Below are positions 17,778 to 31,298 of a stretch of 64,000 nucleotides of DNA, one piece after another. A program made the translations under genes and the position numbers. The DNA is taken from sequence record PV764938.1; one strand, 5' to 3'. Each line of letters opens with the position of its first letter. Within the stretch, counting starts at the first letter, position 1. The notes beneath the pieces were generated by a model. The model searched no databases. It saw nothing but the letters and a program-made list of their open reading frames with translations, and was not told the origin of the DNA.

Positions 17778-18026
17778 ATGAAAACCATGCGAAGCATCAT
17801 CAGTGAATTGGATCGCCTGGTCCCCGAACGGGACAAGCACCAAATTATCGAGGCTAGAGCTTCTAATGTCATCACCAGTTGCATAAACGTTATGCAGCTC
17901 ATCGCCGAAAGCTTCTCCGATGAGGAAGCCGAAGAGCTTAACAAACGCCTACTTGGTGCTATAAAGAATCGTGATCCAAGCAAGTTTAATCGCAAGATCA
18001 AAGAGATGAAGAAGATCGGCAAGTAA
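17778..18026 (+). CDS. conserved late hypothetical protein
   Basis: MKTMRSIISE leader; 82 aa. Confidence 0.75.
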   Translation: MKTMRSIISELDRLVPERDKHQIIEARASNVITSCINVMQLIAESFSDEEAEELNKRLLGAIKNRDPSKFNRKIKEMKKIGK

Positions 18027-18027
18027 G

Positions 18028-18768
18028 ATGACAAATGACATTCGCAAACACATGGACATGCTAAACGAGGCTTCCCTCAAGGATGTAGCCGCGGATGTCA
18101 GCAACAAGGCGAAAGCAGCACTCGGCGACAAGGGCGCTGCTGGTAAAGAAGACGCAAAGCGTCTCTCCAAATATCTCAGCAAAAGTTACAAGAAATGGCT
18201 AGGGCAGACCGGTGGCGAACCCACTGAAGAAACCCTAATGAAATTTCTCGTGTCCAAAATCGGATTCACAGCCGCAAACGCTCGTAAGATTTTCGATAAG
18301 TCGGGCATACAGGACCCGACAAAGGCAAATGAATCCGTTATGGAAGACATTAGCCGTGCTGATCTGGACAAAGTATTTTTGAACGCTGCTCAGTTCGCAT
18401 ATGAGTATGACCTAATTAAGGATCCCGAAGAGGACAAGGAACGCAAGATCAACAAGTCCGAATATTCGGATGGAAGCTTTGGTTCTCGTGGTCGCTCTAG
18501 CGGATATGGTTCCCGTCGTGGTTACCAGAACAGCGATCCCATCGGCGGTCTTCGTGACCAAGTCCAGAAGAACTCCTACCAAGTCGATAAGGGCGAAATG
18601 CTCCAGCAGATCACCAAGTCTGGCCTGTCGAAGGAGCATCTTGAGGATCTCACCGACATCGTTGCAAACGCAAAGAAGTTTGAGGATCTACAGTCCCGTC
18701 CGGACCGTCAGGAGCTTATGAAGCAGCTGGCGCGTATCGGTTACGCCTTCTTCAAATCCAACAAATAG
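18028..18768 (+). CDS. putative head-internal protein
   Basis: MTNDIRKHMDMLNEA leader with an LxE site. Confidence 0.65.
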   Translation: MTNDIRKHMDMLNEASLKDVAADVSNKAKAALGDKGAAGKEDAKRLSKYLSKSYKKWLGQTGGEPTEETLMKFLVSKIGFTAANARKIFDKSGIQDPTKANESVMEDISRADLDKVFLNAAQFAYEYDLIKDPEEDKERKINKSEYSDGSFGSRGRSSGYGSRRGYQNSDPIGGLRDQVQKNSYQVDKGEMLQQITKSGLSKEHLEDLTDIVANAKKFEDLQSRPDRQELMKQLARIGYAFFKSNK

Positions 18769-18804
18769 ATTGACTAACAGGGGCAAGTCTCGCATATAGA
18801 GTGC

Positions 18805-20040
18805 ATGAAACACCTATGCGACTTGCCAATCCCTACCATCCGTGCTATTCTTAGCAAGACTTGGCGTCTGAGCGAAAAGCTCGACGGTTCGTTCATGCGA
18901 GCCGGTTTGGATGAGAATGGCGTCTTCTATACGGAGCGCAAGGGTAAGAACCGCTATTACAGTGTGGATGATTGGCCCGATTTACCCTGGACCAATTACT
19001 TCCGTAGTGCTCACTTGGCACTTGAAGCAGTCTTCGATGGACTCGCTGATCACAACCTGCTTACAGGGAAATACGTTGACATTGAAGTCATTGGCGGTGA
19101 ACTCCCCAATAGCATTCGCTATAGCCTGTTCAGCGCGAACAACCTGTGGATCACCGGTGGCACTGCATTCATGGAAGTAGCCGAAATCGGTGGCAAGAAG
19201 CTATTCCGTTTCGGTGGTAACCAAAGCCATTTCGGCCACATAAAGGTCGCTTCGAATTTCTGGAAGACAACCGACGGCATCGATCTAGTGAAAGAGCGCA
19301 AGGAAATTGCGTGGTCGCTTCGTCGCATGGATATGCTAGATATTGACGCTCATGAACTCTTTGAGGGCCGTGAGCTCAACTTGCGGACATGGCTTGAACG
19401 TACTGTCGTGTTCCGCGGAGAAACTACAAACAATGGTGATCTTCTCGACGCCAAGCTGAATCGCAAGCCGGAGTTCGTACAGCAAGAGGACTGGTCAGCT
19501 AATCGGTTGGAAATCCTAGCCCAGCTCAAAGTAAAGCGCGAGTCTCTCCGTGATGAGTTCGTAAAGCTCTGCAACGTCACGGCCCGCATTTTGAAGCTCA
19601 AGCTCCAACACGTCGACTATGAGAATTTCAAGAAGCGGATTCCATCGCCGGGTGAAGTAGAAGGCGTGGTCATTTCGGTTTGGCTCAACTATCCGGAAAA
19701 GCTTGTATTCAAGGTCGTTGATAAAGATCATTTTGCACCTTTGAACAACTTCACGCATATTGTTCGGTATTGGCTACAGGGTGGAAGACGACCCGAGCGC
19801 CCAAGCTTCTGGTCACGGACCGAACACTGGCCCATGCAGAAACGCCTGGATCGACTAGAAGTGTTGCGTCGTCGATACCAGCGTGGCAAATATGCGCTCG
19901 AACATACTTTCGATCGACGACCACTTGCCTATTCAAACTGGGAACTAGACCAGCGAACGCTTTTGTTGTTCGCGGAACTCAAGCAGAGGATTCAAAATGG
20001 GTGGGGCAGCATTCAAGGACAAGGCCCGTCGGATCAATAA
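18805..20040 (+). CDS. ATP-dependent ligase-like nucleotidyltransferase (RNA-ligase-like)
   Basis: Motif I SEKLDGS, DIEVI, EGVV, FKVVDK. Confidence 0.65.
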   Translation: MKHLCDLPIPTIRAILSKTWRLSEKLDGSFMRAGLDENGVFYTERKGKNRYYSVDDWPDLPWTNYFRSAHLALEAVFDGLADHNLLTGKYVDIEVIGGELPNSIRYSLFSANNLWITGGTAFMEVAEIGGKKLFRFGGNQSHFGHIKVASNFWKTTDGIDLVKERKEIAWSLRRMDMLDIDAHELFEGRELNLRTWLERTVVFRGETTNNGDLLDAKLNRKPEFVQQEDWSANRLEILAQLKVKRESLRDEFVKLCNVTARILKLKLQHVDYENFKKRIPSPGEVEGVVISVWLNYPEKLVFKVVDKDHFAPLNNFTHIVRYWLQGGRRPERPSFWSRTEHWPMQKRLDRLEVLRRRYQRGKYALEHTFDRRPLAYSNWELDQRTLLLFAELKQRIQNGWGSIQGQGPSDQ

Positions 20041-20857
20041 AGAGGAAATTATCCCCACGTTGAAGTGGATCGCCTATAAGACTGGGCTTGGATATCCCTA
20101 TTTGATCAACAACATGATGGGCTCCGCCGGTAAATCCGAAACATCTGGCGACATTGACATCAACATGGATCAGACCAAATACGACAAGCGGGCGCTTTTG
20201 AATAAGCTCGTGAACGTGTTGGGTCCCGATGATGTCAAAGACTGGACTCATGTGAATCAGATCTTCACTTGCATTCCCATCACGGGTGATCCGGCTCACG
20301 GTTACGTGCAGGTCGACTTCATGTTCGGCAATCATGCCTGGCAAGCGTTCTCGTATCACAGCCCAGGCCCAACGTCCCAGTACAAGGGACTATTTCGGAC
20401 TGAACTGATTAAAGCCGCAGTTGCGTTCAACTCGGATTGGACTCTCATGGAGAATGACGAGTTGGTTGCTCGTGTCGGTCCGACATTCTTCCACGACAAA
20501 GGTCTTGTCTGGCGTTATCGTCATCGTGCTCCACGCAAGGATGGCAAAGGCCGAGTAAAAGCACTCAGTGAGCTTACGGAAGCAGAATTCCTGCAGATGT
20601 ATCCGGATGCTAAGAAAGCGTCCGCGCTTATCGTTGATAGTCCCAAGGGCGTTGCTGAGCTAATCTTCGGTTCGGATAAAACCCTACAAGCTTTCGACCG
20701 CTACGAAACGCTCAGTGAGAAGCTGAAGACGTTCTACGGGAGAAACTCCTATGGGACCATCATGGAGATTTTCGAAGAACGATTAAATAGTCTGAAGGTT
20801 GACATACCTAAGGACATTATCGATGAAATTCTTGCAGCAACTAGAGCCGCTGGTTGA
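19997..20857 (+). CDS. Pol-beta superfamily nucleotidyltransferase
   Basis: MGSAGK..SGDIDI and VQVDFM (third Asp). Confidence 0.75.
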   Translation: MGGAAFKDKARRINKEEIIPTLKWIAYKTGLGYPYLINNMMGSAGKSETSGDIDINMDQTKYDKRALLNKLVNVLGPDDVKDWTHVNQIFTCIPITGDPAHGYVQVDFMFGNHAWQAFSYHSPGPTSQYKGLFRTELIKAAVAFNSDWTLMENDELVARVGPTFFHDKGLVWRYRHRAPRKDGKGRVKALSELTEAEFLQMYPDAKKASALIVDSPKGVAELIFGSDKTLQAFDRYETLSEKLKTFYGRNSYGTIMEIFEERLNSLKVDIPKDIIDEILAATRAAG

Positions 20858-21500
20858 AACTCACACTACGGCTATAGAAGAGAAACTGGAAGAGTCCAGT
20901 GTGATTCGCGCACTGGACCAATTCCGTCATTATACGATCCGTGATATCGCGGACTTCGCATTCCTGCATTTCCTCATTTTGTTCATCTTGGAAACGGACT
21001 TCAAGAGCTCCGTTCTCGTAAAGGGCCACGCTACTCGTACCCTACAACACGTTGATTTTAAAAAGCTTTCCTTTATCGGCACCGATCTTTATCTGTACTT
21101 GCATTTGCTTTTGGGTCACAGCTTAGACAAACTCAAGCAGACACCGGCCAATGCAATCTTCATGCGTCGCAATCATCTCCAGGAACGCGACGTAAAGAGT
21201 ATGCTCCGTGATATGGCAAATGGTCATCGCGATGAAGCAAAGGAATCCCGTTTTCTTCTATCCCTGGAGAAAAACCTACAAATAGACACAGCCAATTATC
21301 GCAGTTGCCGACGACTTGTCGCATACTGGGATGAGCAGGATACTCACAATCAAAAACTGGTTGTAACGAGAATTCTCTTGGCTTTGAGGACACGAACACC
21401 AAAATCTGACCTGCTACCCTATTTAGAAGCCTACGCTAAGGCGAAAGCTTTTGAACTCAAGCACGTCAAGAACCCGGAGAAACACGATGAAAGCAATTGA
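20823..21500 (+). CDS. conserved hypothetical (probable virion-internal) protein
   Basis: MKFLQQLE...KLEES leader; start re-assigned to ATG 20823. Confidence 0.65.
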   Translation: MKFLQQLEPLVETHTTAIEEKLEESSVIRALDQFRHYTIRDIADFAFLHFLILFILETDFKSSVLVKGHATRTLQHVDFKKLSFIGTDLYLYLHLLLGHSLDKLKQTPANAIFMRRNHLQERDVKSMLRDMANGHRDEAKESRFLLSLEKNLQIDTANYRSCRRLVAYWDEQDTHNQKLVVTRILLALRTRTPKSDLLPYLEAYAKAKAFELKHVKNPEKHDESN

Positions 21501-21684
21501 AATTCTTTCTGAAAGCCAATTGGCCCTTTTCGAACATGCAAGCGGTGGTGGCACCGGTGCAGGCTCTGTTGCAACCTCTGTAGGAGGCCTTGGTGCTGGC
21601 TTTGACCCTGATGCTGACTTCGGCATTTACGGCGAAAATCCTAATAAGAAAAAGGCTAAAAAAGCAACTGTGATTCGTCGGTAA
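21487..21684 (+). CDS. small Gly-rich late protein
   Basis: MKAIEILSE..LFEHASGGGTGAGSVA. Confidence 0.65.
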   Translation: MKAIEILSESQLALFEHASGGGTGAGSVATSVGGLGAGFDPDADFGIYGENPNKKKAKKATVIRR

Positions 21685-21737
21685 GACACTCAGAGCATAA
21701 ATAGTTTTAACAGAAACTCTCATTTGGAGTACACACA

Positions 21738-22136
21738 ATGACTGAAAAAGTTAATGGTACCAGCTTTGCTGGTCAGTTCCTCACAGGCGGCCTGAACTTC
21801 TACAAGGTTCGTACAACTCTCGATATCCGCGCTACTGGCGTTATCGGTGATGCGTCCCAGAAGCGTCTTGACAAGCTTGTTGAAACAATCTCGACACGCG
21901 CTCAGCCAGTTATCCTGTCGGCTGTTACATCGGCTGTAGAAGCTGCACCAACAGACCTCGTTGGCACAAACGTAACAGTTTACACACTGTCGTTCGCTAT
22001 CGAGCACAACATGGCTTGGGAAGTTGCTGGTTCTAAGAACCCAGACCTCGCTGAGTCGCTCGACGGCATTGAAGGCTTTGTAAACGACGGCGTTGCTATC
22101 GGCAACGTTTCGGTACAGCTCGTAGAATCCCTGTAA
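21738..22136 (+). CDS. putative abundant virion structural protein
   Basis: Own TAAATA (21698), GGAG RBS, highly biased codons, own terminator. Confidence 0.6.
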   Translation: MTEKVNGTSFAGQFLTGGLNFYKVRTTLDIRATGVIGDASQKRLDKLVETISTRAQPVILSAVTSAVEAAPTDLVGTNVTVYTLSFAIEHNMAWEVAGSKNPDLAESLDGIEGFVNDGVAIGNVSVQLVESL

Positions 22137-22162
22137 TCCCTTCCTCGGTTACAGTTACAAAG

Positions 22163-22195
22163 AAGCCAGCGGATCAAAGCGATTCGCTGGTTTTT
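22163..22195 (+). terminator. rho-independent terminator
   Basis: CCAGCGGATC/GATTCGCTGG stem followed by TTTTT. Confidence 0.7.
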
Positions 22196-22401
22196 CCTTG
22201 AATGGCTTGGTGCACCGGAGGGCAAAGCTCTCTCATAGTTTCGGCAATCTCTTTGCCATTACCATCGCCGACACGTTCATCATAGAGCTCAACAAAACGT
22301 GCCCAGAAAGTGTCGCCGTTGGTGTGTTTCTCAGCATTGCAGTGGTCGAGAACGGAAACTGCAATTAAAAGTCGGCTGCGAGCAGTATCTTCAATTTTCA
22401 T
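22174..22401 (-). CDS. early hypothetical protein
   Basis: GGAGATCGAACATG leader and TTGACA promoter at 22449-22454. Confidence 0.7.
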   Translation of the reverse strand: MKIEDTARSRLLIAVSVLDHCNAEKHTNGDTFWARFVELYDERVGDGNGKEIAETMRELCPPVHQAIQGKTSESL

Positions 22402-22585
22402 GTTCGATCTCCCCTCGGTTTCCTAAACGCTAACACAGGATCCAGATTTGTCAACCATGTCAAAAAGAAACCGAGCCTAAGCCCGGTTTTCAAGTTGTTT
22501 TGTTCTAGTTGGTTCGGGGAACCTCACCCATCTAGAACTGCTCTGCGTGTTAAACAAACAATCTTAGCGTGCATTTGTCAACACG

Positions 22586-23890
22586 TTAGCGTGAAATTTC
22601 CTTAGCACGTTTAATATAATCGGTTACATCACGCCCAATGCCCTGGAACTCCAGGAACTTTCCGTTATCGTCGAAGACTGCGCGGTCGATCCAATCGAGC
22701 CAACGAGTCTCTCCATTGTAGGAAACCCGGTGAAGCGTGCGCTTTACTGGAGATTCCACTGTGATCGCTGTGAGGTGAGACAACACCCGTTGATGGTCAC
22801 GAATATCGATGGCCTCAAGTAGACTCGTATTTGGCGTGAACGGCTTCCCAAAGTAATCCAGGAATGTCTGGTTCACAAAGGTCAAGCATAGGTCCATACC
22901 ATAGCAGGCAACGACGTCAAAGGTGTTGTCGGTGATGCTCTTGTAGCGTTCACGAGACAAGTGAAGAATCTGCTCTACGTCCTTGAGATGGGTGATGTCT
23001 CGGATGACCTTGATTCGAGCCTTTGCATTGCGCCAATCAACAACTCGCTCGTTGATTGCGACTTCAACGGAGCCACCAGTTTTTGTACGGAACAAAGTCG
23101 TGTAGGCTTTGTTCGTCATATCACTGGAGCTTCCAATGCGAGAACGTTCCATCGGATGGATGAAATCTTCTGCACGCATTTTGGCAATTTCCGCGTTGGT
23201 GAAACCCGTCATTTCGGTAAGGCGAGGATTCCAGTCCAAGAGACCTGTGTCATTGTGGATCATCATGGCCTCATTCGAAGCCTGTCCAAACACTCGGAAG
23301 TGTTCTTCGGATTCCAACAGAAGCTGCTCGGCCTCAACATGTTCGGTAATGTCTTGGACCAAAAGCATGAACTTGGTCGATCCATCGGAGCGTTCAAATT
23401 CACTGATCTTGATGTTCGGGTAGAACTGATCTCCATCCTTAGTGATACCACGGATAGTGAGTTTGCCCTTGCGGACAAGATCCCAACTGTGAGCTACACC
23501 ACGGAATGTGTCTTGGATGGTTTCAAGAGTGACTCCGCCGTTTGAATCCGTAAAAAGATCACCGACGGTTTTCTGCAGGAATTCCGATTTGCAGAAGCCG
23601 AAAATCTGTTCAGCCGCTACGTTGATGTTTTCGAGTTTTCCCTCGTCGGAAACAAGAATCAATGCATCAGGAATTACGAGACTGGTTGCCTCGATTTGGT
23701 TTGTGTAATCGTCGATGCGATCACGGAGTCCAACAGTGACATCCTTAGCTAGACTAAGAGTGTCGCCTGCTGCACTCATAAAAGCGGTGTAGCTTTCATT
23801 AACCTTATTAATCTGTTCGTCGGCCGCTTGTGCTTTCTTCAAGAGCTCAGCGTTACTGGTACCAAACATGGATCGAATTAGCCGCTTCAT
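22586..23890 (-). CDS. coiled-coil plus three tandem PAS domains, no output domain
   Basis: IPDALILVSDEG...NVAAEQIFGF; WNPRLTEMTGF; FVNQTFLDYFG; PAC ends QDIT, RDIT, GIGRDVT; stop follows third PAS. Confidence 0.9.
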   Translation of the reverse strand: MKRLIRSMFGTSNAELLKKAQAADEQINKVNESYTAFMSAAGDTLSLAKDVTVGLRDRIDDYTNQIEATSLVIPDALILVSDEGKLENINVAAEQIFGFCKSEFLQKTVGDLFTDSNGGVTLETIQDTFRGVAHSWDLVRKGKLTIRGITKDGDQFYPNIKISEFERSDGSTKFMLLVQDITEHVEAEQLLLESEEHFRVFGQASNEAMMIHNDTGLLDWNPRLTEMTGFTNAEIAKMRAEDFIHPMERSRIGSSSDMTNKAYTTLFRTKTGGSVEVAINERVVDWRNAKARIKVIRDITHLKDVEQILHLSRERYKSITDNTFDVVACYGMDLCLTFVNQTFLDYFGKPFTPNTSLLEAIDIRDHQRVLSHLTAITVESPVKRTLHRVSYNGETRWLDWIDRAVFDDNGKFLEFQGIGRDVTDYIKRAKEISR

Positions 23891-24135
23891 TATAGTTTGC
23901 CCTTAATTTCAGCTAGAACGATTTTTAGTCCATGCAGAGCTTCTGTGATCGTCAGGTTACCTTTATAGTAATCGTCAATGATCTTTTCCAGCTTCGCGTC
24001 TTTCTTCTCAATATCTGCAACTAGGCGTCTACGGTCCCAAATCAGAACGCCAATGAACCCCACCAGAAGAGCGATAATTGCTCCGGGACCTCCATTGGAG
24101 ATCGTCGTGAGCAACAATTTCAAAATTTCTTCCAT
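23890..24135 (-). CDS. small single-pass membrane protein (holin-like or sensor partner)
   Basis: TM segment GPGAIIALLVGFIGVLIW then coiled coil; TAATG-coupled to PAS gene; TAAATA upstream. Confidence 0.7.
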   Translation of the reverse strand: MEEILKLLLTTISNGGPGAIIALLVGFIGVLIWDRRRLVADIEKKDAKLEKIIDDYYKGNLTITEALHGLKIVLAEIKGKL

Positions 24136-24229
24136 TTGTGTTGTTCCGTACTTAGAATGCGATGTGTATTGAATATTTATGTGATGTACCCAGTTCACAT
24201 AAATAGCATATTAGTTTGGAGTATTGGGC

Positions 24230-26002
24230 ATGGCTTCCACAGAACCTTTCGACGTTTCCGCAGTTTTGGCAGCATTGGGCGTTAAGCCCGAAGTCGCTAA
24301 AAGCCTGCAGAACAAGATGGACGGCGTAGATTATTTGAATCTAGTAAACTCGCTCTCCGATGATTCCGAAGGTGGTCGTGAAAGAGCTACGCAGATACTA
24401 GCCAAGTACGGAATCAAAATTCGCAAGGTGCCTCACATGGAAAATACACGCCTGGAATCCATCTTCAAAGAGATGCACGCTGGTAAGGATTACGAAGCAG
24501 CCCACAATACTGCTTTTGTTCGTCCGATCAGCGAAATGGAATCTCCGTCCGCAGCAATGTCCGGATATTCCTCGTTTGTTCGCGCTGCCAATGATTCGGA
24601 TGCAGAAACGCTCCGTGACTGGCTAGAAGAGAACGAATTCGACTACCAGAATAATGACAAACTCACGTTTCTTGTGCAAAGTGCAGATCGTGAACGAACC
24701 TACCGTTTGAATCACTTCATGGGTAAGATGAACGGCAAGACATCAGTTATGGACGAACTCGACGAAGCATCCCCTCAGTCGATTAACTCGATCATTGATG
24801 GAGTTGGCGCAAGTGGTTCTAACCGCACACCGATGGCACAGGACGACAAGTCAAAGCGTTTGTTTACTCGTGGTTTCCGCGCTGGTTTTGCTGGTAACTC
24901 CCATGCAAGCGATGAAGGTGTATCCGATGCGGACATGGCAATTGTAGACAAGGGTTTGCAAGCTGGCCGAGTAGCACGCAAGAAGGCTGGTGAGCAGAAT
25001 GTTCCAGCTTCGCATGTTGAAGGTCGCTTCGGAACAAAGAAATTGAATCCGGCTTTCACTAAGGCTGCTGATGCAGCAATGGCGCAGGCAATGGATGAAT
25101 CCGTTGTAGAAGAAAAGAAGAAGAATATGGCTAAGGATGATCTTCCAAAGCAACGCAATCCGTTTGCGGCTCAGGTTATTAAGAAGTCGGGTGGTGGCGC
25201 TCACAACAGCAAGGACCCATCCCGTCGTGACGCTTGGTCCCGCAACGCAAAGCATAAGGGCCGTAGCTACGAGTCCATCGAAGAGAGCATCTTCACACAG
25301 GGCGAATCTGTCCAGTTCGAAGGCAATGATTGCTCCGTACAAATCCCAAGTGGCCCGAATGGCACTGTTGGTCTCCTGATCGACGGCAAGGTTCGCATGG
25401 TCCGCGAAAGCGACATTTCCCGTGTAGATGAAGGAGTTCTAGGTATGACAAAGGTCGACCCACTATACCGTTTGCGAGAGTTGGCCGGAGTTAAACCTTC
25501 TGCTACGAAGATCGAAGAAGATGATTTCGGAACTGTTGATCCGATGGCTGACATGGATGTCGCTGATGACTTTGATGATGCAGGTGCCGATTTTGATGCA
25601 GGTGACATTGGCGGTGATTTCGCTGACCCTGCTGATGACATGGGTATGGACATTGGTGGCGCGTCGGACGACCTGGCAGGATCCGCAGACATTGGCGGTG
25701 GACTTGATCCAATGGCAGATGACGGTCTGGACGGTGATTTTGGTGGTGCTGGTCCTGCTATGGACGGTGGTATTCCTGGCGAACTCCCACCAATGGGCGC
25801 CGGCGATGCTCTCGGTGTTGGCCCTGTAGACTCTGAGGCTTACACTCAGATCCAGGATCATTTGAATAACATCCAGGCTTCCCTCGGTGATGTAAAGCTT
25901 TCGGAGTACCGTTCGCTCATCGCTAAGCTTGAGGCTCTTGCGGTTCAGGTTAAGTCCATGGGTCGTGACTATCTCGGCGAACAGCGCAAGTTGAAGAAGT
26001 AA
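24230..26002 (+). CDS. large acidic head-internal/scaffold-like protein
   Basis: TAAATA at 24200; many xxE sites; Asp/Gly/Met low-complexity tract. Confidence 0.6.
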   Translation: MASTEPFDVSAVLAALGVKPEVAKSLQNKMDGVDYLNLVNSLSDDSEGGRERATQILAKYGIKIRKVPHMENTRLESIFKEMHAGKDYEAAHNTAFVRPISEMESPSAAMSGYSSFVRAANDSDAETLRDWLEENEFDYQNNDKLTFLVQSADRERTYRLNHFMGKMNGKTSVMDELDEASPQSINSIIDGVGASGSNRTPMAQDDKSKRLFTRGFRAGFAGNSHASDEGVSDADMAIVDKGLQAGRVARKKAGEQNVPASHVEGRFGTKKLNPAFTKAADAAMAQAMDESVVEEKKKNMAKDDLPKQRNPFAAQVIKKSGGGAHNSKDPSRRDAWSRNAKHKGRSYESIEESIFTQGESVQFEGNDCSVQIPSGPNGTVGLLIDGKVRMVRESDISRVDEGVLGMTKVDPLYRLRELAGVKPSATKIEEDDFGTVDPMADMDVADDFDDAGADFDAGDIGGDFADPADDMGMDIGGASDDLAGSADIGGGLDPMADDGLDGDFGGAGPAMDGGIPGELPPMGAGDALGVGPVDSEAYTQIQDHLNNIQASLGDVKLSEYRSLIAKLEALAVQVKSMGRDYLGEQRKLKK

Positions 26003-26003
26003 G

Positions 26004-26234
26004 ATGCGATTTTACGAAATTAAAGGCGGGATCCAGGTCCCGCTTTCCAATGAAGAGCGTAGACTTCTTGAGTCCGTTGAGACTGAAGGACAAGTCCTAG
26101 GTGAAGACCTTGACGAACGTGATCGCGAGCTTGCCCGTCAACTCGTGGTCCGTGGCGTCTTCAATATGATCGAGAACGAAGATGATTCCATCACCTATAC
26201 GGTGAACAAGCTAGAAGATATTTGGAGAGACTAA
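26004..26234 (+). CDS. late hypothetical protein
   Basis: MRFYEI leader; coupled to neighbours. Confidence 0.7.
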   Translation: MRFYEIKGGIQVPLSNEERRLLESVETEGQVLGEDLDERDRELARQLVVRGVFNMIENEDDSITYTVNKLEDIWRD

Positions 26235-26893
26235 TGAATAACATCGGCGTCGGCCCAACTGCACAAGACGTAAACGAGATGCAGAAGCTGATTAACTTGA
26301 TGAACGGTAACGCGGACGAACAGTCCTATGAACCAGTTCGTCAGTCTGCCCCTGTTCCTGCAGTGGTAACTTCCGACAAGGATCACATGAAGAAGATCCT
26401 AGAAGGTTTTTACGGCGCTGCTGGTGAAGCGATCACTGAAGTTGTTCGTGAATCTACTCATGACCGTCGTCTCCAAGAAGCAATGCAGACCCACCGCACT
26501 GATGAAGGTGCAATCATTGGGTCTTGGGAAGTTCGTGTAAAGATCACGGAATCCAACGGAGCCAAGCGTAAGATGTACGATGTTCTGCATCCTGGAACAA
26601 AGAGTACGCTGTTCTCCGATCTCGTAATTTTTGAAGCAGCTCATGCGATCGTTCGTTACCTGAACAAGGGTCTTCATACGACTCACAATAAGATCGTTGA
26701 GATCGCAGACCTCGAAGAAATTTACCGACGCAATCGTCAGGATGCCATCATTTTCAAGAAGCGTTACGAGCGTTGCTTGGAACTGAAAGAGACTGCCGCT
26801 GGTGAAGTGTTTGAAGCTCGCTATCACAAGGCTAGAGCACAAGCAATCGTTGCCAACGACTCCATCAAGACGATTCTAGACAATATTCGATAA
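26234..26893 (+). CDS. late hypothetical protein
   Basis: TAATG coupling, GGAG RBS. Confidence 0.7.
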   Translation: MNNIGVGPTAQDVNEMQKLINLMNGNADEQSYEPVRQSAPVPAVVTSDKDHMKKILEGFYGAAGEAITEVVRESTHDRRLQEAMQTHRTDEGAIIGSWEVRVKITESNGAKRKMYDVLHPGTKSTLFSDLVIFEAAHAIVRYLNKGLHTTHNKIVEIADLEEIYRRNRQDAIIFKKRYERCLELKETAAGEVFEARYHKARAQAIVANDSIKTILDNIR

Positions 26894-26987
26894 CACGGTT
26901 TGGCACATCGTGCCAAGTGTCAGGAAAACTGTGGCAGAATAAATAGTTATAAATTAAGCAACTTCCCTTGAATTGGAAGGTTAACAC

Positions 26988-27302
26988 ATGATTGTCAACG
27001 AACTCGAACATAGCGCCCACTTCAAGTTGGCCAAGGTTCTAAGCACTCTAAGCGAGTCGCATGGAATTCACTTGGACTTTACTCAGTCCGACTTCGATCA
27101 ACTGATGGGTGTCTACGAGGAATGCCAGAGTACTCGCTCTCGCATCGTAGAATCGGCAGCTCACAATACGTATCATAGCAATGGTAAGTATCTGGAAGCT
27201 GGTCTAATTCAAGAGGCCATCCACATTTTTCTAAGCGAGGTTGCTCCTAAGCGACTCAACCGTCGCCTGCGAACAACAGCTTTTGGAGCGAATAATGAAT
27301 AA
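26988..27302 (+). CDS. late hypothetical protein
   Basis: TAAATA at 26940; MIVNELE leader. Confidence 0.7.
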   Translation: MIVNELEHSAHFKLAKVLSTLSESHGIHLDFTQSDFDQLMGVYEECQSTRSRIVESAAHNTYHSNGKYLEAGLIQEAIHIFLSEVAPKRLNRRLRTTAFGANNE

Positions 27303-29076
27303 GAAGCATAAAATCGAACGTCTACAGGCTCTGAACGAGTCCGTAAAGGCAACGCAGGTCAAGCTTGCTCGTGCCAAGAAGCTTGAAGAGTCCCTCCGTG
27401 CAACCAACATTGGTGTGCTTCTGGAAGCTGAACTCGAACAAGCTGAAGTAATTCTCGCGGCTAAGGACTTCGTTTCGAAGCTCCAGAAGATGGCCGAAGA
27501 CCTCGCAAACATGCAGGCAGAGTCGATTCCACTTGGTGACTCCATGAAGGAAACACTCGGCCCGGACGCTGCACAGGATTTCGAAAACGCCGTAACCGAC
27601 GCTATCGCACAGGGCCTGGTTGCTGTTCGCGCTGCTAAGGATCAGATCTCTGATTCGATCACTCGCGTTGAAGGTGGTACTCCTGAGGCTTCCGCTGATA
27701 TCGGTTCCGATATGGGCGACTTCGGTGATGATGCTGGCGCTGAGGATCTCGGCGGTGATGATCTTGCTGGTGATCTTGAAGAGCCTGCTGCCGATGTATT
27801 CGGTGGTGCAGAAGCTTCGGCTGGTCCTGCTGAAGAGCCACTTGGTCGTGGTTTCAAGGAATCCTACAAGAGCATTGGTAAGAAGCTGCTTGAGCGTGAA
27901 TCCCTCGATTCGCTCGTTGGTTGGTTGTTCGAGAACATTTCCGCTACAATGCCTGCGGAACAGTTCCCGAAGTTTGCTGGTCAGATCGCAATGAAGGGCG
28001 CACAGGACTCCGAGCGTCTGGCAGGTTGGATCGGCAAGCGCAAGTACGGCAAGGGTCTTAACGCACAGCTTTCGTCCCCACTAGACGATATGGATGCTGA
28101 CATTCTCGATGAAGGTGCTCGTGCAGACCGAAAGACTGTTCAACAGCTCGAAAAAAAGAAAGCTGATGGCAAGAAGCTGAATCCATCGGAAGTTGCCCGT
28201 CTTGACCGTGCCAAGGCTAACACAGAAAAGGAATCCGTAAAGGAAGGCAAGTCCTACCGTTATGACGACGAAGACGGAGATGACGTAGACACCAAGAAGA
28301 AGGCTTCCGCTGAGAAGGGCGCAAAGGCAAAATCCAAGCGTACAATCGAAGAAGCAGTTCGTCTGATCATCGAGCGCAACATTGCACAGACCGGTAAGGG
28401 TCTCGCTGCTCGCGCAATTGCTGAAGCACAAAGCATGTTCCCAATGGTTGAGTCCACAAGCGAGTCGATCGTTGAAGCGTTCACTGCTGAATTCGGTATG
28501 TCCCCGCAGGCTTACTCCGTAAAGAAGGCAAAGGCTGTTGCTGAGGCACAGACTCTGAACCCGCAGGACAAGAAGAATGCAGCCGCTGTAATGAGCAAGG
28601 TTGCTGGTGAAATGGCAACAGATAAGGCACTGGACAAGAAGGGCGTTGACTCTGCAATGTCCAAGTTGGACCCGAAGGAGCGTTCTACAGCTCAGAAGGT
28701 AATCAACAACGCAAAGTCCCAGGGCAAGACTGTTCAGAAGGTTGGCGATCTGGTTTCCGCAACAAAGGATGAACTCGAAGAGAACATCAACGCTGCTAAC
28801 TGGCCAATCAACAGCATGGGTCAGTACAAGGGCGACGCGTTCTCGACCGACTATAACAAGCTGAAGCCAAACAAAACTTCGACGGATTCGGCTCAGGTCT
28901 CGGATACTCCAAAGGCTGCTGATGCTCCAAAGTCCGATACTCCGTGGGATGGCAGCAATAAGGCCCCTGCAGAGTCTCCAAAGACATCCGATGGTGCAAC
29001 AGCAAGCAACAAGCCTGCTAAGCCTTCCCAGGATGGTGCTACAAAGTCCGAAGGTTCTGAAGAAGAAAAGGACTAA
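27295..29076 (+). CDS. prohead core/scaffold-like coiled-coil protein
   Basis: LLEAELEQAEVILAAKDFV..LQKMAEDL; acidic linker; multiple LxE/IxE sites. Confidence 0.55.
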   Translation: MNKKHKIERLQALNESVKATQVKLARAKKLEESLRATNIGVLLEAELEQAEVILAAKDFVSKLQKMAEDLANMQAESIPLGDSMKETLGPDAAQDFENAVTDAIAQGLVAVRAAKDQISDSITRVEGGTPEASADIGSDMGDFGDDAGAEDLGGDDLAGDLEEPAADVFGGAEASAGPAEEPLGRGFKESYKSIGKKLLERESLDSLVGWLFENISATMPAEQFPKFAGQIAMKGAQDSERLAGWIGKRKYGKGLNAQLSSPLDDMDADILDEGARADRKTVQQLEKKKADGKKLNPSEVARLDRAKANTEKESVKEGKSYRYDDEDGDDVDTKKKASAEKGAKAKSKRTIEEAVRLIIERNIAQTGKGLAARAIAEAQSMFPMVESTSESIVEAFTAEFGMSPQAYSVKKAKAVAEAQTLNPQDKKNAAAVMSKVAGEMATDKALDKKGVDSAMSKLDPKERSTAQKVINNAKSQGKTVQKVGDLVSATKDELEENINAANWPINSMGQYKGDAFSTDYNKLKPNKTSTDSAQVSDTPKAADAPKSDTPWDGSNKAPAESPKTSDGATASNKPAKPSQDGATKSEGSEEEKD

Positions 29077-29079
29077 TAG

Positions 29080-29478
29080 ATGAGACTCTCAGAGATCATC
29101 AATGAAAGTGGAGCTTTGGGCTCCACTTTTGTTATCGAGGGACAAACCGATAATGCGATGCGCGAAGTAATGCGCGCTACGCTTATTCCGTTGAAATCCC
29201 AAAAGGTCAGCAAGATCACAGTTGATCAGTTCATGGATACCATCCGTGAAAACCCAATGCTCCAGGGCATTGACTTCGATCAGTCCTATGTGGTTGACCA
29301 ACTCGGTAAGTCCAAGGTTGTAAATAAAATACAAGCGGATCCCGAGAACAACGGGCTGATGACCATCTATTTCGACTTCCCAGTTGGCGATCGTCAAATC
29401 GATGCAAAGCAAGCGGAACGCGAAAAGGAAAGTATTAAGAAGTCCGCACTTCGAGCTATTAAGGACAAACAGAAGTGA
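29080..29478 (+). CDS. late hypothetical protein
   Basis: MRLSEIINES leader. Confidence 0.7.
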   Translation: MRLSEIINESGALGSTFVIEGQTDNAMREVMRATLIPLKSQKVSKITVDQFMDTIRENPMLQGIDFDQSYVVDQLGKSKVVNKIQADPENNGLMTIYFDFPVGDRQIDAKQAEREKESIKKSALRAIKDKQK

Positions 29479-31298
29479 CCAAACTAACTGAAGGCCGTGG
29501 AATTGTTGATCGCATTGTTTTGGACGGAATGGATATTTCCATCGAGGTCGAAGCCGGCGGTACACGCTCTGGCGTAAACTTTAAGGGTGAACGCTGGGAG
29601 AACAAAGTCAAAGCGGCTTACGGTTATATCTTGGGTACAAACTCTCCGGATGGGGAACACCTGGATGTATGGGTGAAGAAAAACGCAAAGGACGGACGTC
29701 CTGTATTCGTTATTCATCAGTTGACTCCCGATGGTTCCAAGTACGATGAAGACAAGGTAATGCTCGGATATTCCTCCGCTGAGGAAGCCATTAAGGCGTT
29801 CAAGGATCATGCGTTCAAACCCGAAAAGATGTTCGGTGGATGCTCGGAGTTTGGTATCGAGCATTTCAAAGTAATTGCGTATCAGGCATCCAACAGTAAA
29901 GCGATGCTTGCTAGTCAAAAAATGTTCGACAAGTTCGTCGAAAAGGGTCTCCTCCCCAAGGGTATAAAGAGCCCAATTCAAGTCAGCCAAATCGTTAAAG
30001 AAGGTGCAAATATGGGTCTCTATATTTCCTACAAATCCCACATTGTCGCTGAGTCAGCTCTCGATCTGGCTCTTACAGGAGGGCTCAAGGCTCGCAAGGC
30101 TAACATGGATCTCATTTTTGAATCACAGAGTGATCTCGGCAATTTCATTAAGCTCATCGATGAGAACATGGAAGATCGTGCTCACCTCGGTGACCTGCAT
30201 GATATGCTTCCGGAGTCCATGGAAGTTATCATGGAGTCGAACTTGTCCGACGCTATTGACGACCTCAAGTCCGAGCTAAAGGTGGAAATGAACTCCACAC
30301 AGATCCATCAGTTGGTTAACTCCATCGCAGCCGACTACGGTATCAACCAGGCAACTCTGTCCGGTGCATTCGAGAAAGCAACAAAGACTTCGATTCATTC
30401 CTGGGCTGCATATCGTGACGCAAACAATGCGGTACTACAGCAACAGAAGGACAATGAGAAACGCGCTGCTGATAAGGCTGCCGCTGACAAGAAGGCTGCA
30501 ACCGCAGCACGTCGCAAAGCAAGCTCTCCACAGGGCAAGATGAGCGAACTCGTTCGCTATGTCATGGATCGCATTGGTAACTACTTTCCGGATGGTGATC
30601 CAACAGACGCCGTAATCGATGGCCTCTCTGAGTTGGGCATTGACACACACGAATACTACCAGAAATATGAGAAGTATTTCCGCAAGTTGTTCAAGGCCGA
30701 AACCGGTTACGAAACACCTTACGATTACGCTGCTGGTATTTGGGACGATATGGCCGCTGATAATCCGGAGGAATACGGCGATCGTAATCCTTATCGTGAA
30801 TCCGTCGATGCAATGCTCAAGCTTGCCGGTGTTAAGACTGCAATCGTTGAATCCACACGCACTCCGCTTGTTCATGCAAGCCGTAGCGTAGTTGGTGCAA
30901 TCAACGAAACACACAACTCTGCGCTACGTGCCTATATGGTCGGATATGCCGTTAAGAAGCAGAGAGCACTCACGGAATCGGTTAGTGAAGTTGATATGGA
31001 TGCGGCACTGCGTCGCTATGCAAACACACTCCTGGCTTATCCAAAGGCTTCTGCAGAAACAGTTCTTCGTGTAGTTGCGGAAAAGGTTGTTCGTGGTGAT
31101 GAACGTGCCCTGCGTGAACATGTTGGCGCCACAACTGGCCTGTCCGTAGATGCATTCCGCGAAGCTATTGCTCAGCGCGTATGGAAGGACAACCGAATTA
31201 GCCGTCAGGTATTCGAGTCTCTTATGGAAGCAACCGAAGCTGGTTGGAACCTAGACTGTCCGGATAAGGGTACTGCTTTCGCTAAGGCTTGCCGCTAA
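29475..31298 (+). CDS. virion protein with N-terminal inorganic-pyrophosphatase-like (InPase) domain
   Basis: ISIEVEAGGTRSG...YGYILGT..PDGEHLDVWV...YDEDKVMLGY..AEEA. Confidence 0.75.
   Translation: MTKLTEGRGIVDRIVLDGMDISIEVEAGGTRSGVNFKGERWENKVKAAYGYILGTNSPDGEHLDVWVKKNAKDGRPVFVIHQLTPDGSKYDEDKVMLGYSSAEEAIKAFKDHAFKPEKMFGGCSEFGIEHFKVIAYQASNSKAMLASQKMFDKFVEKGLLPKGIKSPIQVSQIVKEGANMGLYISYKSHIVAESALDLALTGGLKARKANMDLIFESQSDLGNFIKLIDENMEDRAHLGDLHDMLPESMEVIMESNLSDAIDDLKSELKVEMNSTQIHQLVNSIAADYGINQATLSGAFEKATKTSIHSWAAYRDANNAVLQQQKDNEKRAADKAAADKKAATAARRKASSPQGKMSELVRYVMDRIGNYFPDGDPTDAVIDGLSELGIDTHEYYQKYEKYFRKLFKAETGYETPYDYAAGIWDDMAADNPEEYGDRNPYRESVDAMLKLAGVKTAIVESTRTPLVHASRSVVGAINETHNSALRAYMVGYAVKKQRALTESVSEVDMDAALRRYANTLLAYPKASAETVLRVVAEKVVRGDERALREHVGATTGLSVDAFREAIAQRVWKDNRISRQVFESLMEATEAGWNLDCPDKGTAFAKACR

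Follow-up and report, generated by a model that had tools for sequence, protein, structure and literature searches.

How a PAS protein that carries no output domain might signal, and whether it does so together with the small membrane protein encoded directly ahead of it, is the question raised by two genes of the Sinorhizobium jumbo phage Phosso. The window analysed here, a stretch of 64,000 nucleotides from record PV764938.1, is part of this 469-kb genome, and the pair gp453-gp452 sits at approximately 333 kb of the record. An initial annotation described an 81-residue ORF overlapping a 434-residue ORF through the sequence TAATG, the latter with three PAS units and no kinase, GGDEF or DNA-binding domain, and a TAAATA word upstream. 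The present analysis confirms each of these features: both genes lie on the (-) strand, the stop of gp453 and the start of gp452 share one base, and TAAATA is found within the late-promoter-like motif ahead of the small gene (Table 1). The functional proposals attached to them, a two-part sensor with a FixL-type PAS domain, a tie to lysis timing, or a decoy of host kinases, fare less evenly.

Table 1. Features of the gp453-gp452 locus, in window coordinates; aa, residues of the protein named.
Feature	Position	Strand	Description
CATAAATA, T4-type late-promoter-like motif including TAAATA	24174..24181	(-)	38 nt before gp453 ATG
gp453	23890..24135	(-)	81-aa single-pass membrane protein; GenBank: hypothetical protein
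GGPG Gly-rich motif and transmembrane helix, aa 15-34 of gp453	24034..24093	(-)	Predicted from hydropathy
Cytoplasmic C-terminal helical hairpin, aa 48-81 of gp453	23893..23994	(-)	Predicted; best conserved part of gp453
AAGGG, Shine-Dalgarno-like word	23900..23904	(-)	In Lys-Gly codons of the gp453 gene, 10-14 nt before gp452 ATG
gp452	22586..23890	(-)	434-aa soluble protein, N-terminal helix and three PAS, without output domain; GenBank: PAS domain S-box protein
N-terminal long helix, aa 14-72 of gp452	23675..23851	(-)	AlphaFold2; conserved small residues A40, A41, T44, A48
PAS1, aa 73-181 of gp452 (Pfam ~74-183)	23348..23674	(-)	FixL-like, without the heme-ligating His
PAS2, aa 205-298 of gp452 (Pfam ~204-300)	22997..23278	(-)	Pfam, AlphaFold2
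PAS3, aa 323-422 of gp452 (Pfam ~322-424)	22625..22924	(-)	Pfam, AlphaFold2
Intrinsic-terminator-like hairpin	22468..22489	(-)	9-bp stem then CTTTTT, 97 nt past gp452 stop (consensus scan only)

The ATG assigned to gp453 is backed by homologues of 81 residues, and the Lys-Gly codons that hold the Shine-Dalgarno-like word of gp452 supply the same AAGG(G) in several other loci. The hairpin that follows gp452 would close a bicistronic unit. The Phosso genome gives no sign of an alternative genetic code.

No upstream word in Phosso is more enriched than TAAATA. Of its 141 copies, 82 stand in the sense orientation no more than 100 nt ahead of an ORF, and it is found before the portal, sheath and tail-fibre genes as well as upstream of the small gene in all 22 close loci. 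The unit thereby has a TATAAATA-like -10 word in common with virion genes, as in late units of the T4 type (gp55). A gp55-like late sigma factor is encoded by Phosso itself (record 222194-223021); it is 52% identical to ASV44763.1 of phage Atu_ph07, which matches the late sigma factor families phrog_12791 and phrog_234. The motif also precedes gp440, the head of a run with primase and helicase genes, and is thus not exclusive to virion genes. The gp453-gp452 unit is probably expressed late, as first suggested.

gp452 is the sole PAS protein encoded in Phosso. Pfam assigns three stretches of it to PAS families, with PAS_9 at 81 bits (cut-off 27) and PAS_8, PAS_4, PAS_3 and PAS also above their cut-offs, while NCBIfam finds sensory_box (TIGR00229, 120.9 bits) three times; the same scans detect no kinase (HisKA, HATPase_c), GGDEF, EAL or DNA-binding domain. 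The AlphaFold2 model (mean pLDDT 78) presents a long helix followed by three PAS folds, each a five-stranded antiparallel sheet with flanking helices modelled mostly at pLDDT 86-92; the N-terminal helix is modelled with moderate confidence only (pLDDT 55-65). This helix shows the highest mean pairwise identity in the family (47%); the first half of PAS1 comes next (45%), and the remaining parts of the protein reach 26-35%. PAS3 is missing from family members of 283-309 residues. No output domain was found in 13 close relatives, for which precomputed Pfam assignments list PAS families only, nor in the loci scanned, and one cellular match with kinase domains was obtained at an E-value of 1e-4 only. 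Judged from its sequence, the Atu_ph07 homologue, labelled 'histidine kinase' in GenBank, has no phospho-accepting His dimerisation domain and no ATPase domain, and the label is corrected here.

Foldseek aligns the gp452 model at probability 1.00 with DosP, PpsR, LOV-PAS and FixL. The top matches, DosP, PpsR (without its HTH) and the Brucella LOV-PAS-HK (E 1e-14 to 1e-13), share with gp452 an architecture of tandem PAS domains joined by helices, at global TM-scores that are low (0.2-0.36). Unlike gp452, they have both known cofactors and output domains of the GGDEF/EAL, HTH or kinase type.

The first PAS domain was originally described as FixL-type, and the resemblance is real. Residues 72-192 align across the whole domain to the FixL heme-PAS (PDB 1dp6, 2cmn, 8js5), which is the only solved structure type matched by gp452 in a PDB sequence search at E<=1e-3 (E 1e-6, 31 bits), and the NCBIfam model sens_FixL_Rhizob matches residues 65-190 at 34.8 bits (cut-off 850). 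The heme ligand is not kept, however: the column of the proximal His (His200 in the F-alpha helix of Bradyrhizobium japonicum FixL) is occupied by Leu122 in gp452, and in an alignment of 18 family members it is variable, gapped and placed in the least conserved part. That alignment holds no conserved cofactor-binding signature. FixL of B. japonicum or Rhizobium moreover has the HisKA and HATPase domains that gp452 lacks, whereas gp452 is phage-encoded and partnered by a separate membrane protein.

The FixL likeness, together with the fact that both cultured phages, Phosso and Atu_ph07, infect Rhizobiaceae, speaks for the proposal that gp452 is a decoy which forms heterodimers with PAS histidine kinases of the host, FixL for example, and thereby shuts them down, gp453 serving only to localise it. 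This is highly improbable. The similarity is confined to the domain level, late expression would leave little time to reprogram host transcription, and many members of the family belong to uncultured phages with no host assigned. Conservation peaks in the putative partner-facing helix and in the membrane protein rather than in PAS dimer surfaces or surfaces that would mimic a kinase; this part of the initial annotation finds no specific support.

In the model of gp453 an N-terminal amphipathic helix is followed by a transmembrane helix that continues into the cytoplasm (residues 17-57), a turn and a further helix (63-77); the 'coiled coil' ascribed earlier to both proteins denotes such long predicted helices. 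A hydrophobic 17-mer begins near residue 17 in 176 of 181 family members, and charge bias predicts an N-out/C-in topology in 176 of 176. The C-terminal hairpin has a mean pairwise identity of 74%, compared with 28-50% elsewhere in the protein, with K51, I52, Y56, G59, A66, L70, E76, I77 and K78 invariant. Searches for a known identity gave only weak matches driven by the transmembrane segment in Pfam (CcmD, FAM165), no match in PHROGs, NCBIfam or PADLOC, noise in a PDB profile search and nothing at E<=0.001 when the model was compared with BFVD by Foldseek.

Small membrane proteins are known to modulate sensor kinases, as with SafA-PhoQ and MzrA-EnvZ. The pair also resembles the TM-HAMP-PAS sensor kinases in having a transmembrane helix, a cytoplasmic two-helix unit and PAS domains, here split over two polypeptides. 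It differs from them in that 26 gp453-family members yield no Pfam match to HAMP even at E<=10, the modelled connector between the cytoplasmic helices spans approximately 5 residues instead of approximately 14, there is no kinase, and the family was not found in the cellular genomes searched.

The distribution of the two genes bears on whether they belong together. Clustered at 50% identity, the gp453 family comprises approximately 190 clusters, nearly all of small proteins (59-162 residues, nearly all 80-95), among which there is no fusion to PAS; a search of 185,579 genomes of bacteria and archaea gave no relative. The top match of the profile search, a protein of 3151 residues with 28 matching stretches (P0049), is not a fusion but a repetitive coiled-coil protein matched by composition. 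The gene pair recurs in Atu_ph07, where an 81-residue protein (37% identity) and a 536-residue protein with four PAS domains overlap through ATGA, in a 607-kb contig and other contigs, and altogether in more than 25 metagenomic phage loci besides Atu_ph07. Among 21 IMG/VR loci, 3 are cut too short to tell; in 17 of the other 18 the PAS homologue is directly next, and in the remaining one (L010) it follows after approximately 840 nt. Distant gp453 members of 93-94 residues precede proteins with 1-3 PAS domains, and a subset alignment of divergent members led to three loci. A helix-plus-PAS protein with 1-4 PAS domains follows the small gene in all contexts with enough downstream DNA except L050, a short contig in which no PAS gene is called after a distant gp453 homologue.

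At the junctions the gap between stop and start is -4 to +4 nt in 17 of 24 cases, and the codons overlap in many loci. Exceptions are the insert in L010, a 123-nt gap in L012 and a homing-endonuclease gene directly after the small gene in L024, which contradict an obligatory translational coupling. Such occasional insertions would also fit two genes that function independently and have only the transcript in common. This is very improbable, given that stop and start overlap in many loci and that the two genes stay adjacent and in the same order as identity falls from 94% to roughly 25-40%. Every other neighbour varies, and no third gene is conserved with the pair. The recurrence is more than chance as judged by these sequence comparisons, which, on the same basis, identify gp453-gp452 as a conserved, phage-specific module. 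The lengths of the helices in the two partners do not co-vary in any consistent pattern. The module appears to be new: our literature search found no publication that deals with Phosso or with PAS proteins of jumbo phages, and the pair is unmentioned in the Atu_ph07, AP-J-162 and jumbo-phage comparative papers.

We lean towards the view that the pair is a module specific to phages and transcribed late, whose two products together form a PAS sensor tethered to the membrane. Of the two-part sensor suggested at the outset, the two-part unit stands, in the strict synteny, the overlapping or abutting codons and the shared conservation of the gp453 tail and the gp452 N-terminal helix, while a FixL-style heme reading does not, the heme His being absent. 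Pairing of the two proteins is what we infer from these patterns. Translational coupling would provide gp453 and gp452 in similar amounts; the 34-residue cytoplasmic hairpin of gp453 may dock on the N-terminal helix and the start of PAS1, which would hold the PAS domains at the cytoplasmic side of the membrane; and a cue read by the PAS domains, other than through a FixL-style heme, could then travel through the bundled helices to a further partner or to the membrane helix with its Gly-rich motif. As to the process most likely affected, our guess, and a doubtful one, is an event at the membrane late in infection, for example the timing of lysis.

In vibriophage VP882 the phage's own PAS sensor, VqmA-Phage, couples a chemical cue to the phage programme and triggers lysis (PMC8284805). 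Its likeness to gp452 is drawn at the level of the PAS fold; unlike gp452 it has a DNA-binding output and no membrane partner, and it belongs to a temperate plasmid-like phage. Comparable in layout are the holin/antiholin pairs of T4 (T with RI/RIII) and lambda (S105/S107) and the single-TM holin-like proteins BhlA/UviB, small late membrane proteins with a charged cytoplasmic part. As in the former, gp453 has a soluble partner that could bind it; in contrast to them, it has no holin HMM match and no linked endolysin.

In an alternative reading gp453 is the missing holin of Phosso, or a pinholin-like trigger, and gp452 a PAS antiholin. Bound to the cytoplasmic tail of gp453, gp452 would hold back hole formation or permit it, depending on the redox, energy or small-molecule state of the cell, and so set the time of lysis. 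gp453 has the general holin layout (small, at least one transmembrane helix, a charged hydrophilic C-terminus), carries the late-promoter motif and is among only five small hydrophobic Phosso ORFs with TAAATA nearby. HMM searches find no T-type or BhlA holin in Phosso, and the lysis mechanism of Atu_ph07 is reported as unknown (PMC6102473). The pair, at 333 kb, is not linked to the Phosso endolysins gp62 and gp381, at record positions 20.9 kb and 277 kb, or to a spanin-like pair at 123 kb, but since the lysis genes of this phage are themselves scattered, the missing linkage is weak counter-evidence. One distant locus (L051) has a Peptidase_M15_4 gene two genes downstream.

Other observations weigh against this alternative, which we consider unlikely. 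gp453 matches no holin family in Pfam or PHROGs, Phage_holin_T and Holin_BhlA included; the L051 peptidase is the single nearby endolysin in approximately 27 contexts; and another late ORF, with 84 residues, a transmembrane segment and a charged tail, exists at record 411704-411958. The tail of gp453 is also far more conserved than its membrane helix, a bias not known to be typical of holins. Two specific identities were rejected: Holin_BhlA, the cluster of which an Atlas feature search lists at 0.91 (a lead only), for want of HMM support, and T4 holin T, its family Phage_holin_T being absent. The tie to lysis timing proposed in the initial annotation is thus not borne out by family matches or gene context. 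In its full form, a lysis clock gated by ligand or redox state, with gp453 as the holin of Atu_ph07-like giant phages and gp452 as a cytoplasmic antiholin that reads host metabolism, the proposal is distinctly unlikely. We know of no PAS domain in any antiholin, nor of any PAS-regulated holin described earlier, and gp453-gp452 would be the first if this reading were true.

The output might instead lie in other proteins, the pair acting as a membrane-tethered adaptor on second-messenger or respiratory proteins of host or phage, for instance c-di-GMP enzymes, with the PAS domains as interaction modules. The best Foldseek matches do act via partners or attached enzymes, the number of PAS domains varies between phages, and in L059 EAL and HDOD genes lie directly upstream of the pair. 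That context comes from a single locus, however, Phosso has no EAL or HDOD gene, and no third gene accompanies the pair consistently; we regard an adaptor role as quite improbable.

The sensors of strictly lytic phages are little known, and here output-less PAS domains are locked to a membrane protein found only in phages, in a pair that, with its conserved late-promoter motif, is spread over a large clade of giant phages from soil and water. If the complex forms, the sensor would be split over two polypeptides and its output would necessarily be a late membrane or protein-protein event, making the pair a model for PAS arrays that signal without an enzymatic domain. Because both Phosso and Atu_ph07 can be grown on Rhizobiaceae, the pair is also an experimentally accessible candidate for what controls lysis in Atu_ph07-like phages; should the lysis-clock reading hold, a strictly lytic phage would time lysis by sensing the physiology of the cell.

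In the circular, 469,473-bp genome of Sinorhizobium phage Phosso (PV764938.1), to which window bases 18000-30000 are 100% identical and in which window base 1 corresponds to record base 310001, the genes of gp453, labelled 'hypothetical protein' in GenBank, and gp452, labelled 'PAS domain S-box protein', have one base in common, the TAA stop of the former and the ATG start of the latter forming TAATG, and the overlap described in the initial annotation is thus borne out by the coordinates. A GTG-started, 102-aa version of the gp453 gene is unlikely, as the homologues are 81 aa long with the N-terminus identical in position, and is also disfavoured by the promoter-like word that falls within the extended part. 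Three stretches of gp452 match PAS in Pfam, which detects no domain of another kind in the protein; NCBIfam agrees, and the AlphaFold2 model (built with 18 homologues; mean pLDDT 78) presents an N-terminal helix followed by PAS units connected by helices, as expected of the output-less triple-PAS protein originally proposed. The top Foldseek matches are the multi-PAS proteins DosP, PpsR and LOV-PAS. The gp453 model comprises a helix at residues 2–13, a second at 17–57 that includes the membrane segment and, after a short turn, a third at 63–77. The coiled coils claimed for both proteins stand in so far as the term is taken to mean long predicted helices.

Coordinates of the gene pair (window positions) and of the gp452 segments (residues)
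Feature	Position	Strand	Length	Source
gp453 gene	24135..23890	minus	81 aa	
gp452 PAS gene	23890..22586	minus	434 aa	
gp452 N-terminal helix	aa 14-72			AlphaFold2 model
gp452 PAS1	aa 76-180			AlphaFold2 model
gp452 PAS2	aa 208-298			AlphaFold2 model
gp452 PAS3	aa 325-421			AlphaFold2 model

No relative of the small protein was found in 185,579 bacterial and archaeal species (one genome per species), and of 50,697 phage records Phosso and the Agrobacterium jumbo phage Atu_ph07 alone have it. The Atu_ph07 protein, also of 81 aa, is 37% identical without gaps, and its gene overlaps by ATGA that of a 536-aa four-PAS protein (AUZ94861.1; Atu_ph07 locus L002:4947-6557). The GenBank label of the latter, 'multi-sensor signal transduction histidine (kinase)', is apparently mistaken, because its full-length alignment to gp452, covering the N-helix and four PAS-like repeats, leaves no space for a kinase domain. 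A word-based search returned 44 small-protein homologues, nearly all of exactly 81 aa and many from contigs of 430–608 kb, while the hits of the full profile search fall into 190 clusters at 50% identity, with lengths of 80–95 aa in nearly all (range 59–162) and fusion to PAS in none; the apparent best match of the profile search, a repetitive coiled-coil protein, was composition-driven and was rejected.

Three of the 21 IMG/VR loci end too early to judge the downstream gene; in 17 of the remaining 18 a gp452 homologue immediately follows the small gene, and in the other (L010) it follows after ~840 nt. At another locus (L024:1174-2154) a NUMOD3 homing-endonuclease-type gene, to the end of which the DNA was read, comes after the small gene, at the place where the PAS gene usually begins. 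Distant members of 93–94 aa precede a helix-plus-PAS protein with one to three PAS domains; on one short contig with a distant homologue (L050) no PAS gene was called. Clustering of all neighbouring ORFs left only the small gene and the PAS gene common to all loci. The PAS partners form size classes of ~180–210, 280–310, 380–440 and 536–557 aa, corresponding to one to four PAS domains. Because the 12 closest relatives of Phosso have the four-PAS form (550–557 aa; L005:4247-5899 and the protein matches P0196-P0206), with the extra PAS between PAS1 and PAS2, gp452 appears to have lost its second PAS, seemingly through a deletion between inter-PAS linkers that resemble each other.

A hydrophobic 17-mer begins near residue 17 in 176 of 181 small-protein members. 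It is preceded by an acidic segment (mean 0.65 K+R, 2.0 D+E) and followed by 15 residues with 4.5 K+R, from which the positive-inside rule predicts an N-out/C-in topology in 176/176; hydropathy reveals no hydrophobic segment in gp452. Mean pairwise identity in the gp453 family reaches 74% in the cytoplasmic C-terminus (aa 48–81) against 28% in the N-terminus, 45% in the juxtamembrane stretch and 50% in the membrane segment. In the gp452 family it is 47% in the N-helix (aa 29–72), 45% in the first half of PAS1 and 26–35% in the remainder. The invariant residues of the gp453 tail are bulky (I52, Y56, L70, I77) and those on the gp452 N-helix small (A40, A41, T44, A48), a pattern that fits a putative conserved helix–helix interface between the two.

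The resemblance of PAS1 to FixL, also noted at the outset, is genuine: FixL heme-PAS domains are the only solved structures matched by the gp452 sequence at E<=1e-3 (aa 72–192, E ~1e-6), and the NCBIfam FixL equivalog scores 35 bits on this stretch versus a cut-off of 850. However, heme or oxygen sensing gains no support from it, because the proximal-histidine column of FixL holds Leu122 in gp452, where the family alignment is most variable and gapped, and that alignment contains no conserved Cys or His in PAS1. The invariant PAS1 residues (D75 A76 L77, N90, A92 A93, F97) resemble positions common to PAS cores more than they do ligands of a cofactor.

The sequence CATAAATA lies 38 nt upstream of the gp453 ATG, and a second copy, CACATAAATA, lies on the plus strand (window 24198-24205) upstream of the divergent gene gp454, within the 94 nt that separate the two genes. 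Across the genome, no 8-mers are more enriched ahead of Phosso ORFs than those containing TAAATA. Of its 141 copies, 82 are sense-oriented and no more than 100 nt from the ORF that they precede, a space that makes up 6.5% of the sequence and holds just 10–33% of control hexamers of the same composition; the copies peak 20–40 nt before the start codon. At least seven of ten large TAAATA-bearing genes tested serve the virion or its morphogenesis (portal, tail sheath, tail-fibre-like proteins, virion structural protein, protease), although the word also precedes gp440, the head of a run that includes primase and helicase genes. TAAATA stands immediately upstream of the small gene in 22/22 close loci. 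A T4-like late sigma factor is reported for Atu_ph07 (PMC6102473), and a Phosso protein is 52% identical to the Atu_ph07 protein matching PHROG late-sigma families. AAGGG, 10–14 nt upstream of the gp452 start, is supplied by Lys-Gly codons close to the 3' end of the gp453 gene, gaps between the two genes are −4 to +4 nt at 17/24 junctions, and a terminator-like hairpin lies downstream of the pair. The motif, the late sigma factor, AAGGG and the close junctions make late expression and translational coupling of the pair, as initially predicted, well supported at the sequence level. TGGTTGACA is likewise enriched upstream of ORFs throughout the Phosso record (L026-L049) and probably serves as the −35 element of early promoters that host sigma-70 recognises. 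Nearby, gp454 (window 24224-26002, plus strand, ~590 aa) ends in a highly acidic, Gly/Asp-rich C-terminus and matches no family, and a 411-aa ORF annotated as hypothetical (window 18805-20040, plus strand) carries a KxDG-type motif close to the N-terminus and matches Pfam RNA_ligase weakly (E 0.085).

The idea that gp453 is a holin setting lysis timing draws on its place among five small hydrophobic Phosso ORFs with TAAATA nearby, on the absence of known holin families from Phosso in an HMM search and on the report that the Atu_ph07 lysis mechanism is unknown. The dispersal of the Phosso lysis genes also speaks for it, the endolysins being encoded at 20.9 and 277 kb and a spanin-like pair that lacks annotation at 123 kb. 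So does one distant locus (L051:3501-5575), where a 94-aa member precedes, in order, a 211-aa one-PAS protein, a 209-aa unknown protein and an endolysin-type Peptidase_M15_4, the peptidase gene lying two genes downstream. However, this is the one context with endolysin linkage, gp453 has no homology to any holin family, and its membrane helix is much less conserved than its cytoplasmic tail. The overlapping genes at 123 kb, gp191 and gp192 (L061:3748-4532; record 123247-124031, which is not part of the window), resemble a spanin pair, in that gp191 combines an N-terminal TM helix with a long coil and gp192 has an initial lipoprotein signal and a lipobox with terminal Cys; TAAATA lies upstream of them also. 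On one uncultured phage contig (L059:3126-4950) the pair is directly preceded by EAL-domain and HDOD-domain genes, a hint of a signalling-adaptor role, but Phosso has neither gene. The proposal that gp452 is a decoy for host PAS kinases lacks specific support. PADLOC returned no defence-system match.

By itself gp452 is ordinary and already annotated. In the searchable literature we found no description of the obligate pairing of a PAS protein with a phage-only single-pass membrane protein, of the pair's conserved late-promoter motif, of a varying PAS number around a fixed N-helix–PAS1 core or of the breadth of this family. The best-supported reading is that gp452 and gp453 would together form a membrane-tethered PAS sensor produced late in infection.
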